A stretch of DNA of 64,000 nucleotides from positions 8,990,001 to 9,054,000 of the forward strand of contig OU015568.1 in assembly GCA_907165135.1 (NCBI GenBank). Reading direction: 5' to 3'. Positions 16,201-62,723 of the stretch are shown here, piece by piece (within the stretch, counting starts at the first letter, position 1; the number at the start of each line of letters is the position of its first letter). Source of the stretch: Oikopleura dioica. Taxonomy: Eukaryota; Animalia; Chordata. The notes beneath the pieces were generated by a model. That model searched no databases, was not told the origin of the DNA, and was given only the letters and a program-made list of their open reading frames with translations. The position numbers were made by a program, and so were the translations under genes.

Positions 16201-19200
16201 TGATCAAATTTACGTCGTCGCGGAAAACCGTCCGGCAAACTTCCGCGGTTATTTCACCAATACCCAGTCTTTGAACGCGTTCAAGCTCATTGCGAAGACC
16301 CTCCACGATCTCATCGAATCCTCTGGTTCTTGCTACAAACCAGATGTTTACCCTCAATGCACGAATTTCCGCGATATAACGAGGAAAATTGTGTTTATTC
16401 TGAGCATGGTGAGTCTTCTTGATCCAAGTCAGCTTGAGAATGCGACGAAATTCTTTGACTACTCATCTGAATCACCTGAAATTGTTCTTGGGATGAAAGA
16501 TGCGATTCTTGAAGCGTTGAAATTTGAGCTTCCTGACTCGGGAGGTGCTTTGACGTCGAAAAACAGCGCAGAAATCATCTGCGTTGAAGACACAAATGAA
16601 GATGGCGATGATGATACTGTTGTCGCCGAAGAAGGGATAATGGATATCGACAATGATGATGAAGACGACGACGATGATGACGACGAAGATGACGACGAAG
16701 ATGAAGACGAGGACGATTATGAAACGGGGACGATTGACGGCGAAGATCATGAGGACGATGATGATGAAGATGATGACAACGATGTAGATATGGAGGAAGA
16801 AGATTTCTCTAGTGAAATCCTCGAAGGCGGCGGAGAAGGATTCCAGAATGACGGAATTGTGGTCGAAATCCCTGGTGACATCAGAGGCATCGATCTTGAC
16901 CGACTTCTCCAGGACAACGACTCCTCAATCGCAGATCTTGCCCTTGCACTATCTATTCAGGCGGATGAACGGCGTCCTGATCCACCAATTAGCCGGCTAC
17001 CCATTCCAACTGTGCCGGACACAATCGAAAGCGACAAAGAACAAGACGAAAATATCCCGAGCACACCTGCTGAAGTAAAAACATCTCCATCAGAAGACCC
17101 AATCTTCTCGAAAGAGCGACAAAGACAGTTCGCTATCAAGCTGATTTCCCAAATCGTTGCTGATGACAAGAATGACGTTCGAATCCAATACCAATTGATT
17201 CTCGCTGCACTGTCGAAATTGGACGTTAATGAGCCAGATGAACTCGATGTGATTGAAAGCGTCATTTCGAGCCTTGTGCTAAAAATCAAGGAGACTAAAT
17301 CATTGCTTCATATTATTATTCTCTCCGAATTCCTCAGATTCAACAATGATTTTACTTCCATCATCTCTCAGCAAATCAGCAATCATGGCATTATCGATAT
17401 TTTCACCAGCTACATTGGAGACAATGTCTCAGTTACGCCAAAGAACTCACAATCTACGACTAAAAAATCATCAGAGCAAGAAAAAGCAGATCAGAAGCCC
17501 TTCATTATTCCAAAAGAATACTCAGCAAACAACAAACTTGGCACTGTCAGCGCCATGCTACGTCTTCTTGAGGCGTTAAAAGAAAGAGATGCTCTTCTTC
17601 AAGTTCCACCGCTGCTGCTTGATCTAGTCATAAAAGTCATCGTCCGCGAGGAATCGTCAAAGTGGTTCATTAATGTCTGCAAGCGTTTTGGTCTTTGCTT
17701 TACGCAGTCGGCTGAAAAGTTCAAAGCTCGCCTCGATCGGGAGAGACTGATCAAGAGCTTCGAAAAACTCCAGGTTTACGCGAACAATGACTCTTTAGAT
17801 CTATCCTACAGTCAGCTCTCTGAGCTTTACGAAGAACTCAAGTCAATTGTTGAGATTGCTCAAAAGGTACTGATGATTTTCGATTCCCCCAACTTACTAA
17901 TTTCTTCCTAGCGACCAGGATCATGGCAAAAATTTGTGGAAAATCGTCCTCATATAATCGAGCTTATCCTCAATCTCCCGACGAACATAGAATGCTGCAA
18001 CAAGGACGTCATCAAGCTCCTTGAAGTGATCGTATCTCCAGTTCAAATTGGCACTCAAAAGTCTCGAAAACAATCCGAGTCGATTTGCGAAAAACGTAAG
18101 CGCTCCAAATCCCAGGGAAGCGCCAAAAATACAGGCGAAAACTTTGTGGACAAATTTCTCGACAGTAAGCGTCCATCGAGCCTCATTTCTCATCCCTTGT
18201 TCGTTCGAAAAAATCTCTTCTCCGAGTCGGAAAGCGTCCGATGGGCAATGCACTCGCTGATGAAAACGCTGTTTGCGGATTGCTCTGATGCTAAAAAGCC
18301 GGTACTCGTCAAGTTTTTGTGGACAATGTTCAACTCTTCGATTCGGTTTGGTCAGCGAGCCATCCAGTACACCGATCTCCTCGGTTTCTTCACGATTAAA
18401 TCTAATATCCCGGCTGAAACGCTCAAGGGATACGGCGATCTTGTTGCAAGAACTTTGAATTCGCAGTTGACTCAACTATCAACACATTCGAATTCGCTAC
18501 TTTACTCAAGACTTGCGGAGCAGCTTTCTTTCGGCGGATTTTATCTTGAATCCCAGCTTTGTCTCTCTTGCAACACTCAGAACGAGGAGTTCACATCATC
18601 AACGATCACGGGCCTCAAGGGTGATACAAAGTACACAACTACCGCTCAGATTTATAAACTCAAAGCCGGCCAGGAAATCCAGCGGGTGAGTATGAAGCTG
18701 ACCGATGTGAAGCGAACGCGACATGTGAAATCAATGACTTTGTATTACACGACAAGAACAAGCATCCCGATTATCGAGCTGAAGAACTCACCACAACTCT
18801 GGTTGAAAGCGAAGACAATCCAACTCTCGCAGGGACAGTCAGAAGTCACTTTCAATCTTCCAGTTTCAATCAAGGCGAACTTCTTGATCATCGAGTTTTC
18901 ATCTTTCTACGACGAGAGCTACTCGATCCCTGAAACGCTTCCTTGCCCTCGATGTTCGAACAATGTTCACACAGATCCAGGAATCTGTGGCAACTGCGGC
19001 GAGAATGTTTTCCAGTGTCACAAATGTCGAATGATCAATTACGACGAGCGGGACCCTTACATTTGTACCCAGTGCGGATTCTGTCGTTATGCCAAGTTCA
19101 GTCTTTCAATGTCATCAAGAAACTGCACCATCGCCGATCCAGTTGAAACAGAAGACGAGCGAAAGCGAGCAGAAGTAGAACTCAAAAAGCAGCTTGTGAA

Positions 19201-22200
19201 AGCTGACGCAACCTGGGAAAAACTAATTGTCCAGCGACGTGAGCTAGAGGACTCTTGCTACGAAATCGAAAACGGCGGCAAAGAGGATTGTAAAAAAGAA
19301 GCAAAGCCCAAGGCTCAGCCACTAGTTACAAAATACAATGAGTGCAAGACAAGTCATAACGATATCACATCAATGATTCGAGCAGCAAATGCTTGCCGAG
19401 AAACACTAGCAGATTATGAGAGAAGATCAAACTTGAATGCAGGGCTGGTAAATTAGCGCACTATTTTCTCTCGAAGAAAAAAAAATTAGTGCACTAATTT
19501 TTTTTAGAGACATTTTCGCGTCTTTCGCGCCTTAAGTGCACTAAAATGACACTAATTTTTCCTCTTGAGGAAATTAGTGACTTTTCGAGAGCTGATCTAC
19601 ACTAAAGACGCGAAAAAAGAGGCTCTTTTTCATCATCCAATGGGCTCTTCCCGGATGATAGCTTCATGGAAGACGATTTTTGTCAGGGAAGAATTTCTTC
19701 AAACTGAAACTGCTAGATATTTAAAAATCAATGCATCATAAATACCACAATGTATGACACAAATTAATTTTTAAAAAATCGTTTTCAGTCCCCCACCAAA
19801 TTAAGTCAGCTAAGGTTATCGATCATCCTCTTTCACCTGAGCGTATCAGTTCTTTGAAACAAGTACTTTTCAGTTTTGCGAAAAAAAATATATATTTCCA
19901 GTGTCCTTATTTGGTAACAAAAAAGTTGAAAGGAATAAAAGTCAACTTTTGTTGGAAATTCTTTTTGTCGAATATTTTAATGATGAGCTAAGATAAGCTT
20001 TGCTAGGGAGGTCTTCTCCCTAATTTTTTTTATCGCAGGGCCATCCGCAGCTGGATCTTCCTGCTTTTCTTCATTTTTTGCCTTTCTTCTCCTTGTCATC
20101 GTCCAACAACTTCTCATCGCTGTCCTCAACAGTCTCTGAAGCTGGAGCAGCCTTGACTGATACGTTCTACTTTCCGGGAACGGTCGAAATTTTTGGTAAC
20201 CCATTACCAATTTTCGGTTTTCGATTATCAATTTATATTTATTTTTTCGCCAAGTTAATGAATAAAACACCCCACAAGTTTTCTATTTTACAGGCGCGGA
20301 GCGCACACTCGCTCTTTGAATGAAAAAAATCGACACTATTTTGGCGAATTTGGTAATGCATTACCAAAATTTGTTATGGGTTATCAATTGGTAATGAGTC
20401 CGACCTTTTCCCCTACTTTCGTGGTCTACGAGCTCTTCTCAGTATCTTTATATAATTCTTTATTCACAGAATCACATATATTTGATAATTTAGAAGGGAG
20501 GTCTCCTCCCAAACTCACGCTTACTTGATAACTGCTAATGAAGAACTCCTCCCAAAGTTTTTTTTTTAGTTTTCTAGGATAAAGCAATGCTATATTTTAA
20601 GAGTAAAATATATCGGGAGTAAATCTGCTTCTAGATCTCCCTTATGATTTTGTTAATTATGAATTATATTAACAATCTGCACAAGGCTGCTCCTGCTACA
20701 GACTTTTGAGGACACCGAAGATTAGTCGAACGACGACAACAAGAAGATTGACAAGAAAGGGAAAATGCAGGAAGAACAAGCTTCAATAAAAAATTAATTA
20801 CTTAAAGAGTCTAAGCTTATCATTCAAATCCAGCACAGAAAGATTGTTTCTTTATATTTATAAAGAAAATTAACAAATGGATTGATAAAGTCTTTTTTGA
20901 CTATATATTAAAATTCACGCCCTCGATTACCCAATCCACTTTATTGAAACTCTTTGAAATTCTAATATTAACGAAGTTTGAAATTCTCAAACTTACGTAT
21001 TCTTCAGAATTAAAGAGCCCGCGCTCATTGGCGGGCCAATCAGCAGCCCTTATTTTCGACACTTTTCGAGACACACGCGAAAGAGACGCGAAAGTCACTA
21101 AAGTCTCGACAAAATAAATTCGCGCACTAATTTTAGTGCACTTAAAATTTTCGACAGATTTTAGGACGCGAATTTACCAGCCCTGCTTGAATGCAGTGAA
21201 ATCAACGCCGAAACTAACTGGGGAAAATGACTCAATTTCGATGTCAAATTGCTACGGCTGTGCTGTGAATGGAGCAGAGAACAATCTCACTCTCGTCCGA
21301 GCTCTATGTCAGATAACATCTGTTCGCGAAGCTCTTATCGCTGACGGCGCCGTGGAAAAGCTTCTCTCATCTCCGCCAAACCTTGGAAGCTCGAATTTAC
21401 GAAAGCTCATCCGAAGAGCAATCTGTCGACTTGTTCGCGGCTCGAAGGAAGCCTCAAAAGAACTAGGAGAACGACTCAAAGAAAAGATCATCTCTCTCGC
21501 CAAGCAAAATCAATCAATTGCACGGCTGGATGTTCTTCTTCGAGAAGATCTTGAGCTCCTAAAGCAATCGCTGAAATATCGAGACTCCGGATGGGAATAT
21601 CGAATCAAAGCGGCCATGGCCATCTTCCTCGAAGCGTCAGAACTCTGTGACAATGTTTCATCTGGAACGACAATCGTGAATGGAATTTTACTCCCTTGTC
21701 TAGCAATTCTCAAGAAGCAAACCAGCAGCCAAGAAAACAACAAGGAGAGCCGAACACCATCTCCTTATGACGTCAATTTCCGAAAATGGGCAGATGGCGA
21801 TCCTGATCATCAATACGAAACCCGCACAACTGCTAGAATCGACGAGGAAGAGGAACCATCATTAAAATCTGTTCCAGAGTCGTACTGGCTGCCAAGACTT
21901 ATGTTCTGCAAATGGTCTCAAGAAGCTAGAATTCAAGCTTGTAATGTTGTCAGCAATTTGGCCAAGAACAGGAAGACCGAAATCATCGATCTAATGGTGA
22001 CTTACTTTAAATATGTCAATGAAGCCGGAGAATATGCTGTTGAGTATCTTGGATTGCTCAGAACTCTGCTTGTAAAAGAACAAGAACTTGCGCCTGGGCT
22101 TTCTTCTTTGTTACTGAAAGGACTTGGCGAGCTTTTGATGTCTCAAATCAATGCGTTGATGAAACAAGAACTTGAATATTCTCAGATGACCACGATTTCT

Positions 22201-25200
22201 TCTAGCACTGACCTTCGAGTTGGGAAAACCCTCGACGCGATTGTCCTACTGCTCTACATCATCATTGATAAATCGAAAGATCTGCCCTTCAAGATGATCA
22301 AGCCAATCCTGCGAGGCTATCTCAGTCTCTGCAGAGTCTCTCTTTACGAACCAAAGCGATTGACGACGCCCAAGATGGTCTTCTCAAGCTCCTTGAGACA
22401 CTGACCTCTGGAGGCGAAGATATTGCACGTGACTTTGTCAAGATTTGCTTCAAAACTCTTTCTCACTTTTCTAAGGATGATTTCCAGGCGAGTCAGTTTG
22501 TTTTCGAGCGACTCTGTAATATCATCCGTCCTGAATCAACCGAGGACGAGTCCTTCCGAGTTCAAATCGACAAAGATCCTCTGCAAGAAGAATTTCTACC
22601 AGGTCGAATGGTCAACAATCCTTATCCAAGTTCGGCCGTTGGAGAAACAATCCGCGATTTGAAGAACAAGATCTGCCGTGATACAGAGCTCATCGCGATG
22701 GTCGACGACGATACGAGCTTGGAGCTATTAGTTTCGAACAAAATCGTCAAACTTGACCTGGCCGTCGCAGATGTCTACAAAAAGATATGGCTTCAAAACC
22801 ACGAGACCAATGTGCCAATGCGAGTCATCTATCGTATGCGAGGATTGATGGGCGAAGCGACAGAAGAATTCGTCGAGACGCTACCGGAAGACGATCAAAA
22901 TGAAGAAGAGATCTTCAAACGAGCATCTTATCTTGCTGTCGATAATGGATTGGAGACGGTTCTCGATAAACTCGAATCCATCCGATCTCTTAATTCTCGA
23001 TCACGACCGCTTCTTGGCGCTGGATTGAAATTGCTCGGATTCTGCGTCCATCTTCGCGTTTGCCGAGACGCACTCGCTGAGAACTCCTCCGCTTCCATGT
23101 TGAACATCATGCTTCAACTGTTGAACATCTGCATCGAAGCAAAAGAAGCAAAACTCGTCGAGGACATCCTAGCAATCATGAATCGAGTTTTAGCTGAAGC
23201 AGCAACCCACGGACAGGAAACAGAAACAGGCCACAAACACGAACTGACGAAGCTTCTTAAGGCTATCGACTCCGAGTTTGTTCAGTCGCGGCAAAATATC
23301 GTCATGTCACTGATGGAAATGATCCCGTTCTTATCATTCGGAGATGAGCAACTCATGGAGCAGCTGATTAACCATTTCGATAGCGTCCTTTCCAACTTAT
23401 CTAGCTTTGACGAGTCTCAAGATGAACAACACAAGATCTACCTCGAGTGCTTCTGTGACATCCTCAAAGGTCTCAAGCCCGATAACCCGGGTGGCAAGCA
23501 TTTGAAGGATCTCATGTACGCTAGAAATTTGCCTCGACAGGCAATCGATTATCTGCGAGCTAAAACACCTTCGGATAAGAATTACGCATCTGATGAATGG
23601 AAAGATCTTCTTGAACGACCCGTTCTTCCATTTATTCTTCGGATTTTAGCTGGACTCGCTACTGGGCATCCTGAATGCCAGAAGCTTATTGGAGAAATGG
23701 TAATTCCTGAGTTGCATCGATTGGAACAAGTCGCTGCTGGCGGAATCGGTGAGTCCTTACAACTCTACTTTTTCTAATAATAATTCAGGTACTCTGGCGG
23801 AGGAAGCTCTCGAAGCTCTCAGAGACAATAGTGATGTTTTCAAGCGCGTCTCTGAAGCCCGCCGGGCCACTCGCAAGGAAAAAGCTAAAGTCGGCAAATC
23901 GCATCGTATGAAAACACTTCTCAAACTCGGTATGGCGGAGAATACCGACGGAACCATCAAAGCTGACGACCGCAAATCCGAAAAAATGAAGCTCGAACAA
24001 GCAGAAGACGGGCCTCTTTGTGTCATCTGCAAAGAAGGATGCCAGTTTGAACCGAAGAAAATCATGTCGATCTACTGTTTCTGCAAGAGAGCTACTGTCG
24101 AGCCGTTTGAAGCGAATTCGAGGAAGACCGTCGGCTTTGAGACAGTGTCCAGCTTCAATTTGATCCACAACGAGTGTCACAAAAAAGCGGTTGTTGCTAA
24201 ACGATCCAGGGATGAGTGGGAGACTTCTTTCCTTCATAACAACAGGTGATCAACAGAAATTTAACTTTAATTAAAACTATTTTAGTACCCGGTGCAACGC
24301 GCTCTTGCCACTGTGGGGCCCTGAAGTCAACGAGTCTGATTTCTCAACCCAAATGGCGAAATTCAACGAGTCTGTTCGCGACGCTACTGGCGTATCTCCC
24401 GATGTCACCTGGCTTATTCACAACATCAAATTGATGCTGCACCGATTTTCAACGAATGGCAAATTCTACCTTGATGCGGGCGGCGGAGGACCGGAGAGTA
24501 ACATGAAATTCTTGCCGCACTTGATTCACTACATTTTGTACACGACTAACACCCTCAAAACTCAGGTAAAAACAAAAATAATTAACTGCTGCTAAAAAGA
24601 TTTTCTTTTCAAGAGCTCTTTGAAAACGCCGATTCAAACCTTCCTGGACGATTTCAACGTTAATTCATCTTGGGCCGTCTCTGGCTACTTCTACAAAGCT
24701 ACATCAGCCCTTATCGTGTTTAGTAAAGAGGTGTGTTTGTTTCTCACTTTTCATTGATATAAAAAATTCTATTAAAGGAATGGATTAAATGCAGAGTCGA
24801 CTTTTTGAAGAAAATGATCATTTGTACCCACATGCGTGAAGTCTCAATTAACCCGAAAAAGGGAGTCACCGAGGCAGAACGAAAGGAACTCCCCTTTGAA
24901 AAGTACAAGCCTACGATTTTGTTCTGGTTCCTAATTGATCAAATCTTGGACAAGCTTTTTGACGAGCAGGCAATTTCTGACAGGTGACCAATCAGAACAC
25001 GCCGCGGCAGTTTTAAACATTGATTTTTAGCGCCGGAGAGGAATACACAGAGAAACTGCAAATGTTCATCCGAAAGAACACTGTTTCTCTTCAGAAGTCC
25101 TGCGAAAAGTTGGTGAAGACATTCAACGAAGAATTCATTGTCGTGGATTCCCTGGAGGAATTCATTGATGTGGCGAGTCTTTACAGCGTAATTGAGCCTT

Positions 25201-60607: not shown

Positions 60608-62723
60608 ATGAGTACAGATTTCATCAGAGAAAACTTGAAGAAAAGAAAACAAAGATACGATGTTTGGCTGGAACTTATTGAAGAACTAAATGCTGCGCAG
60701 AATAGGGCTGATAAGTGAGTAAAAACGAATTCATATGCTAATAAATCGTAATTTCGGTTATTTTTTGTCACAAAAAGACCCCTAAACACAATTTTTAGAT
60801 TCGAAGAGGAGAAAACGCAACTAGAAAAAGTCCTAGCCGAAGAATCACGCTCATCCCCTCGCGAATCTGCAGTTTCTGGCGAATCTGACTCTGTTAGATC
60901 TGCGCGAATTTCCCATCTCGAGCAAAAATGCTTCAATCTCCAAGAAGAACTGACCGAGCTTCTCCGCTCGAAAGCGTCCACGGCCGAAGAATTGTCGCGA
61001 AAAAAAGACCTCGTTTCCGAACTCGACGATAAGCTCCGCCTTTTGCAAATTGAAAATGACGAGAAAAACATGAAACTTCAAAATTACCAAAACGGCGCGG
61101 AAAATAGCGAAGAAGCGATTCGCGAGCTAAAACGAAATCATCAAGTGCTTCTCGACGAACATGCAGCTTTGCAGCTTGCATATTCGCAACTGGAAAAACA
61201 GTGCGAAAATTTGAGAACTGAAAACGGTCATTTGACGAAAGAACTACTAAGGAACAGGGTCAAAATATCCAAAACACGGGAAAACGCAGCAATAACTATT
61301 TTACAAAAATAGTTATTTTTGTAAATTTACAAAAACAACCTGAAAACCGACTAATGACTATTCAATTTTTGACCCTAGAATCAGGGCGAGAGAGCAAATA
61401 GCCGAATACGCGAATGCAGAAGCAATAGCTGCCGCAAAATTGAAGGATTTGCAGAAAAAGATCGACGCAGAAAATCTGATCCGAGACGCGACTAAAGGAG
61501 TTCTACCGGATGCGAAAATAACGTACACCGCTAGGAGCTCTCCGCCGATCAAGAAGATCAATCAATTCGAAGCTAACAATGGAGAGGTCTTCGAGGTCAA
61601 GTTCAGTCCTGACGGGGCGCACTTGGCCACAGCTGGCGAAGACAAATGTGTCAATATTTACAACGTCAGAAATCCTGCTTCGAGAATCGAATCCCCTGTT
61701 CTCACACTAAAAGGTAGATTTCAAAAAATCAAATTGGACGAGAATTGATTTGAATAAATTCAGGTGCAAATGCTGCTATTACGAGTCTCAGTTTTTCAAA
61801 GAACAGAAGACACTTGTTGGGCTCGTCGAATGATCAAGCCGCGCGAGTTTGGGATCTGTCCTCGGGCAAGATTGTTCAGTCACTTACCGGCCATCAGGTT
61901 CGATTTTTATAGGGAAAGAAAAGAAATGATTTGTTATAAAAGAGGCCTCTGTAAAGTCGGTCTATCATCCTTTCCATTTTTTCTTTCAGGGACCTGTAAC
62001 TACAGCACGATATCTAACACAAAGCACGGCCGTGACAGGCTCACAAGATCGTACAGTTCGACTTTGGGATTTGACGAAAACCTCGTGCACAAAAACCCTC
62101 TGGCCTGGATCAAAGGTAGACCCGCCTGTTTTATTTGATCAATCTTCAATTAATGCTTATCCAGTGCATCGACGTCTGTAACGGTTCGATGGACGGTTCA
62201 CTCATCATGTCGGCGCATTACAACAAACAAATTCACGTGACGGACATTCGAGCTTCGGCAAAAGATGAAAAGCAAGTGATCAGTTTGTCTGGTCGACCGA
62301 CCGGTATTGCTGTTCCAGCGGATTTTGGTCAGTCGTTACTGGCATTGACGCGAAACAACGACTTGGCGGTCATTGATCTAAGACAGATGCAAGTGCGAAT
62401 AACACTCAGCGATCTTCAGAACGACTTCAGAGTTACTGCTGATTACTCAAGATGTTCTCTTTCGGTAATTTTCTAAATTTCTGCGATCAGCGAAAATAAC
62501 TTCTTCTTTGAACTAGATCTGACCTCTTTTCTTTTAGCCTTGTGGAGGACTAGCACTGGCAACAGGTCAGGATGGGCGAATCTCCTGCTGGGACGTAAAT
62601 ACAGGAAGACTACTCGACGGAGCAAATGCCGAATCCGCCGGAAATCTCATCTCATGCGACTGGAGTTCCCGCCTCGTTGCCACTGGTTCCAAATCAAAAA
62701 CTGTCGTACTTTGGTCCGATTAA
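60608..62723 (+). CDS. ATG16L1: Autophagy protein ATG16L1 (coiled coil plus WD40)
   Basis: N-terminal helix, ATG16 coiled coil (LQEELTELLRSK), then WD40 repeats (EVFEVKFSPDGAHLATAGEDK, LGSSNDQAARVWDL, SAHYNKQI), ending VVLWSD*. Confidence 0.82.

Follow-up and report, generated by a model that had tools for sequence, protein, structure and literature searches.

The interrupted UBR4 exon and its insertion

The stretch of DNA analyzed here (64,000 nucleotides, hereafter the window) contains a UBR4 coding exon that is interrupted by a noncoding element (Table 1), in a surrounding region that consists almost entirely of coding exon. The upstream part of the exon encodes the Pfam UBR4 domain PF24079 (E 1e-11). 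In homology searches of the host gene, which were run exon by exon, approximately 20 UBR4 homologues from a representative library aligned on both sides of the element with residue numbers that are nearly consecutive; their alignments end at about 19423-19447 and restart at about 21196-21250. In one homologue (P0012), for example, residue 867 falls at nt 19447 and residue 873 at nt 21220. Since the homologue alignments drop out over a variable number of residues right at the insertion site, the element lies in a poorly conserved, variable linker that follows the UBR4-like domain. Near-identical pieces are present in marine plankton metatranscriptomes, and these, like the ORF-inferred introns of about 45 nt, are in keeping with an origin in the Okinawa Oikopleura dioica assembly (PMC8008620).

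The upstream frame enters the element as part of ORF 17936..19456 and closes at a TAG (19454-19456), 15 nt beyond the insertion point. An unspliced reading would stop at this TAG, and the resulting protein would be without everything encoded downstream of the insertion.

Table 1. Features of the interrupted exon and of the inserted element; positions are those of the window.
Feature	Position	Strand	Evidence or remark
Interrupted UBR4 exon, upstream part	17936..19439	+	open frame; Pfam PF24079
Interrupted UBR4 exon, downstream part	21194..22401	+	open frame, running to 22404
Non-autonomous hAT-type transposon (assigned from sequence), noncoding, 1746 bp	19440..21185	.	TIR + duplication, no ORF >97 aa
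Target-site duplication, left copy CTTGAATG, 8-bp	19432..19439	.	8/8 identical to right copy
Target-site duplication, right copy CTTGAATG, 8-bp	21186..21193	.	exact match to left copy
Left terminal inverted repeat (TIR), perfect 15-nt part CAGGGCTGGTAAATT	19440..19454	+	holds candidate donor GT at 19448-19449
Right TIR, perfect 15-nt part CAGGGCTGGTAAATT inverted	21171..21185	-	candidate acceptor AG at 21179-21180
Palindromic subterminal motif TTAGTGCACTAA	19486..19497; 19533-19544; 21133-21144	.	degenerate copies at 19453, 21119
Branch-like CTAAT (21127-21131) and competing AGs ending 21136, 21157, 21164	21127..21164	+	
11-nt direct repeat CTTGAATGCAG	19432..19442 and 21186-21196	+	allows GG..AG intron 19443-21196 (1754 nt)

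From position 19440 the element reads CAGGGCTG/GTAAAT, and at its other end it reads ATTTACCAG/CCCTG, with 21185 as the last base (slashes mark candidate splice cuts). The two ends are perfectly complementary over 15 nt, after which the complementarity continues imperfectly to about 37 nt (81% complementary); a 14-mer of the TIR has exactly two occurrences in the 64-kb window, one at each element end and inverted relative to each other. Motifs of the TTAGTGCACTAA type lie near both ends, with three matches against 0.09 expected by chance, and a second short motif, AGACGCGAAA, has three occurrences in the element. GC content is about 35% in the element, compared with about 45% in the flanking exon. 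The open reading frame listing shows no transposase ORF in the interior, where the longest ORF is at most 97 aa, and the cargo gave neither a Pfam family at the curated cut-off nor an Rfam match.

The ends of Ac, hobo, and Tol2 define a start consensus of (C/T)A(G/A)NG for hAT TIRs, and the CAGGG with which this element begins fits that pattern. Because an 8-bp duplication, a CAGGG-type TIR, and subterminal repeats are found together with the absence of a transposase, the element is, as judged from its sequence, a non-autonomous hAT-type transposon. The transposition signature, that is, the duplication together with the TIR, is present. The original prediction of a hAT-type insertion in a UBR4 coding exon is thus borne out by the TIR, the duplication, the flanking frames, and the UBR4 homologues.

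Two further structures lie in the interior of the element: an inverted duplication of about 107 nt with 75% identity (20049-20155 and 20682-20782) and a small palindromic TTGGTAA...TTACCAA motif pair (20188-20213 and 20347-20372). From the sequence, the inverted duplication and the motif pair suggest a composite or nested structure of the element interior.

No second copy of the element is present within the 64-kb window. A near-match to the TIR at 60703 (TAGGGCTGATAAGT) has no inverted partner and was put down to chance. Nine JGI metagenome loci that match the exact TIR pattern were rejected as family copies; in BLAST comparisons none of them resembles the element.

The uninterrupted form of the exon can be read in relatives, two of which supply independent empty sites. 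A plankton RNA contig of 254 nt, approximately 7% diverged, joins 19432 to 21187 and skips exactly 1754 nt, the length of the element together with a single duplication copy, and it carries no scar; at the joint, 10 letters fit either side. This contig is the sole junction record, and what it shows is the empty site in a diverged animal; neither a read nor a contig joins 19447 to 21181. An ENA contig (L010, 1-1264, assembly ERZ27288961) covers the same UBR4 region with about 75% nucleotide identity and 83% identity at the protein level. It is uninterrupted at the site (...ADYERRSNLAAVKSE...), where it and the corresponding protein P0164 read ...RRSNLAAVKSE..., and a 59%-identical relative, protein P0062, is also contiguous across the site. 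Word-index protein searches found only P0164 and P0062 to span the site. A search of representative proteins returned nothing above 60% identity except a 109-aa fragment (P0065, 87%) that ends short of the junction, and the protein libraries searched contain no full-length protein model of the UBR4 gene from the source species. Since the site is empty in relatives, the UBR4 exon was formerly continuous, and the insertion is young or lineage-specific, belonging to this lineage or to this individual.

Three raw RNA runs that bear the species label gave 0-1 reads at 90% likeness over 5.6 kb (17400-23000), probably reflecting a lineage that is too diverged. The label of these runs evidently covers lineages too diverged for read mapping, and the gene is of the large housekeeping type. 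The divergence of L010, for its part, shows how deeply split the Oikopleura dioica-like lineages are and why reads that share a species label may fail to map.

Splice-like signals in the terminal repeats

The left TIR contains a GT and the right TIR an AG that, used as donor and acceptor, would leave a short in-frame remnant of the element in the message. When 19447 is joined to 21181, 8 + 5 + 8 = 21 nt are retained, and the joined frame, ...RRSNLNA-GLPCLNA-VKST..., is free of stops. Both copies of the duplication are read in the same frame because they lie 21 nt apart after splicing. Each possible donor (GT, GC, GA, or GG) between 19425 and 19474 was paired with all AGs between 21100 and 21199. 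In the donor interval the only GT is the one at 19448, and of the GT-AG pairs near the element ends none but 19448/21180 stays in frame and avoids a stop; with AGs ending at 21103, 21136, 21157, 21164, and 21196 the same donor leaves scars of 98, 65, 44, 37, and 5 nt, respectively, all of them out of frame. The claim of a GT donor at 19448 and an AG acceptor ending at 21180, with the 21-nt in-frame scar GLPCLNA in the predicted product, therefore agrees with both the sequence and the enumeration. In silico, the length of the mRNA would change by zero or by a multiple of three through either the 21-nt scar or a zero-scar GG..AG intron, which is considered below. The right end of the element had also been described as open in the UBR4 frame back to 21136, as the ORF listing confirms; reading the sequence itself extends the open frame to 21118.

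The arithmetic was claimed to be alike in both orientations, and it is. Every base involved lies in the outermost 15 nt of the TIR, where the symmetry is perfect, so an insertion in either direction would leave an identical scar of 13 nt from the element. The companion claim, that the design works in all codon phases, stands only in part: the frame is always kept, but the scar is stop-free in 11 of the 12 combinations of codon phase with the base that opens the duplication. The lone exception is a scar that starts at codon position 2 with a duplication beginning with A, which creates a TGA.

The general donor consensus is CAG/GTAAGT. The context of the candidate donor, ctg/GTAAAT, agrees with this consensus at 7 of 9 positions. 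On the minus strand of the window, an intron of 49 nt deduced from ORF logic alone (59665-59617) has the same GTAAAT start and ends with TTTTTTCAG.

The candidate acceptor, TTTACCAG/CCCTG on the plus strand, is pyrimidine-rich and has no T-run directly before its YAG, while the clearer ORF-inferred introns nearby have acceptors with a T-run (TTTTAG, TTTTCAG). The list of local introns was selected by length alone (35-65 nt, with a unique solution) and is mixed, so its use is qualitative only; the ORF-inferred introns of the window are about 45 nt long. Splice weight matrices were also trained by unsupervised EM on GT..AG candidates that join ORFs, but what they captured was coding-like motifs, and they were discarded.

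A branch-like CTAAT does lie upstream of the acceptor, as predicted, but its position is 21127-21131 and not 21126-21130. The AG at 21136 follows it by just 5-6 nt. Two of the AGs that compete with 21180, CTAATTTTAG at 21136 and GATTTTAG at 21164, form TTTTAG and are, in this qualitative comparison, closer to the local acceptors than 21180 is. That two of the three AGs between the CTAAT and 21180 resemble local acceptors counts against splicing at 19448/21180. Read from the sequence, the reverse orientation presents a run of nine Ts and then earlier AGs ahead of the CAG of the TIR; the arithmetic is therefore symmetric, but the choice of sites is not necessarily so.

The element ends can also pair with each other. 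As RNA, 19425-19500 and 21120-21200 can anneal into a duplex (-61 kcal/mol); the candidate GT and AG both fall in its perfect 16-bp stem, where their cut positions are staggered by 3 bp. According to this model, pairing of the ends could hinder access of U1 and U2AF, or it could instead bring the element ends together in this animal. With competing AGs, a possible zero-scar GG-AG route, and a stem that would bury both sites, more than one splicing outcome is conceivable.

Explanations for the insertion

We favor, with a probability of roughly 0.45, the explanation that at least some of the UBR4 pre-mRNA loses the element as a new 1.7-kb intron through 19448/21180, the ability to be spliced being a by-product of its TIR. 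A non-autonomous hAT transposon would have inserted recently into a formerly continuous UBR4 coding exon of an Oikopleura dioica-type genome, and the ordinary spliceosome would now remove it by joining the GT in the left TIR (19448) to the AG in the right TIR (21180). Such a splice would add GLPCLNA and would be the sole canonical in-frame route. We infer both the splicing itself and this choice of sites. The splice-like character of the TIR would be a by-product of chance resemblance in a very gene-dense genome, which is how maize Ds1 and the algal introners behave, and we would not call it an adaptation that has been demonstrated for the family. The proposed intron would be long for this animal, at 1.7 kb compared with a median intron of 49-bp in the source genome assembly (PMC8008620).

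A serious rival, which we nevertheless hold to be doubtful, is that the window records a broken allele: a very recent deleterious hit on one haplotype of the sequenced diploid animal, kept when the assembly was merged and not productively spliced, with the signals in the TIR a coincidence. A null allele of this sort has to be taken seriously because the region is near-continuous exon, in which a random insertion would often land in an exon, and because the assembly merged the haplotypes of a single male (PMC8008620). Neither of the relatives in which the site can be read has the element, and the perfect duplication and 15-nt TIR fit a young insertion. How readily coincidence would supply the splice signals depends on how narrowly they are defined. 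Among simulated random 15-nt TIRs with a hAT start, 10-13% contain some GT and AG that give a scar of 3n nt, as a broken allele would allow, but only 0.5-0.8% combine a GTRA donor with a YAG acceptor and also give a 3n scar, which argues against coincidence. For a single family we regard this rarity, a result of simulation, as suggestive; across many families and the thousands of windows that were read, it is weak evidence. The same rarity bears on the opposite proposal, namely that a selected introner family has shaped a symmetric TIR to hold donor and acceptor, so that exonic insertions become harmless seven-codon additions in either orientation and any phase. The design holds in silico and has an exact precedent in Aureococcus (PMC9860276), but one combination of phase and duplication yields a TGA and the reverse orientation places a T-run and earlier AGs before the CAG of the TIR; on balance we consider selection of this kind unlikely.

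The remaining candidate is an intron that leaves no trace at all. The triplet that follows the duplication happens to be CAG, which is also how the TIR begins, and the element is consequently flanked by an 11-nt repeat, CTTGAATGCAG. A noncanonical GG..AG intron running from 19443 to 21196 would restore the original mRNA exactly, with a net change of 0, in frame and stop-free. In the Okinawa assembly, 11% of introns have ends other than GT/AG (PMC8008620). The donor that would have to be used (cag/GGCTGG), however, agrees with the U1 consensus at no positions other than +1 and +5, with a canonical GT 5 nt downstream, and the acceptor, TGAATGCAG, lacks a T-run. The plankton contig has exactly the joined sequence that this splice would produce, although an empty allele predicts the same sequence; with the contig approximately 7% diverged, a lineage without the insertion is the simpler account. 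We therefore judge zero-scar splicing quite improbable, the least probable of the explanations considered here.

Relation to known systems

Introns turn over rapidly in Oikopleura; where the new ones come from is unsettled. Transposon-driven intron gain is documented mainly in algae, in protists, and in Fritillaria, the sister larvacean. Sitting in a gene that looks essential, and with the empty site intact in relatives, this young transposon provides material in which to watch the birth of an intron in an animal. If carriers of the insertion splice at the TIR sites, transposon-driven intron gain extends to a laboratory chordate, and if the family should prove to be a selected introner family, it would be a directly observable source for the fast intron gain of Oikopleura. 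If carriers do not splice, the locus holds a fresh deleterious insertion, and its splice-like TIR is a coincidence.

By analogy with the systems described below, the element is a candidate for a newborn intron, and introns of this kind are familiar from algae and maize. The principle of a transposon that carries its own splice sites has already been published, and what we describe is not new in kind; for Oikopleura dioica, a full-text literature search turned up no description of introners. Introner elements of Aureococcus are reportedly the subject of Huff et al. 2016. The Aureococcus introners carry both splice sites, and there 4 nt of the element plus an 8-bp duplication give 12 nt, or four amino acids (PMC9860276, Fig. 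2F; Gozashti et al. 2022). The principle is that proposed for the UBR4 element, likewise a DNA transposon with an 8-bp duplication, whose candidate splice sites are internal and whose scar would again be divisible by three (13 + 8 = 21 in the present case). The Aureococcus introners, however, are short and high-copy, they reside in an alga, and their splicing and family membership have been shown genome-wide, whereas the UBR4 element is a single 1.7-kb copy in an animal, with a predicted seven-codon scar.

Maize Ds1, as summarized in PMC5432752 (citing Wessler 1991), is spliced from exonic positions by way of donors 12, 22, and 33 bp, and acceptors no more than 24 bp, from its termini. In that summary Ds1 resembles the UBR4 element in being non-autonomous and of the hAT type and in having an 8-bp duplication; when exonic, it offers terminal splice sites (within about 35 bp), and most of it is removed from the mRNA. 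There are differences as well, in that Ds1 gives several alternative products, many of them out of frame, and its sites work in one orientation only; it is not described as TIR-symmetric or as leaving a fixed in-frame scar.

Two further systems are represented here by what PMC11282704 relates of them. Micromonas introners take one splice site from the element and the other from the duplication and leave the mRNA unchanged (PMC11282704), and in this they resemble the zero-scar GG..AG route of the UBR4 element. They differ, as portrayed there, in having a 3-bp duplication, in being short, in occurring in an alga, and in that their splicing has been demonstrated. Closer to Oikopleura, the larvacean Fritillaria borealis has lineage-specific, MITE-derived introns with TIRs and target-site duplications (Henriet et al. 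2019, via PMC11282704). Fritillaria, too, is a larvacean tunicate in which, according to this source, TIRs and duplications point to transposon insertion as the source of introns. Its introns are characterized there as short and mostly noncanonical (AG-AC, AG-AT), with U2-type spliceosome involvement shown, whereas the UBR4 element offers a candidate canonical GT-AG pair.
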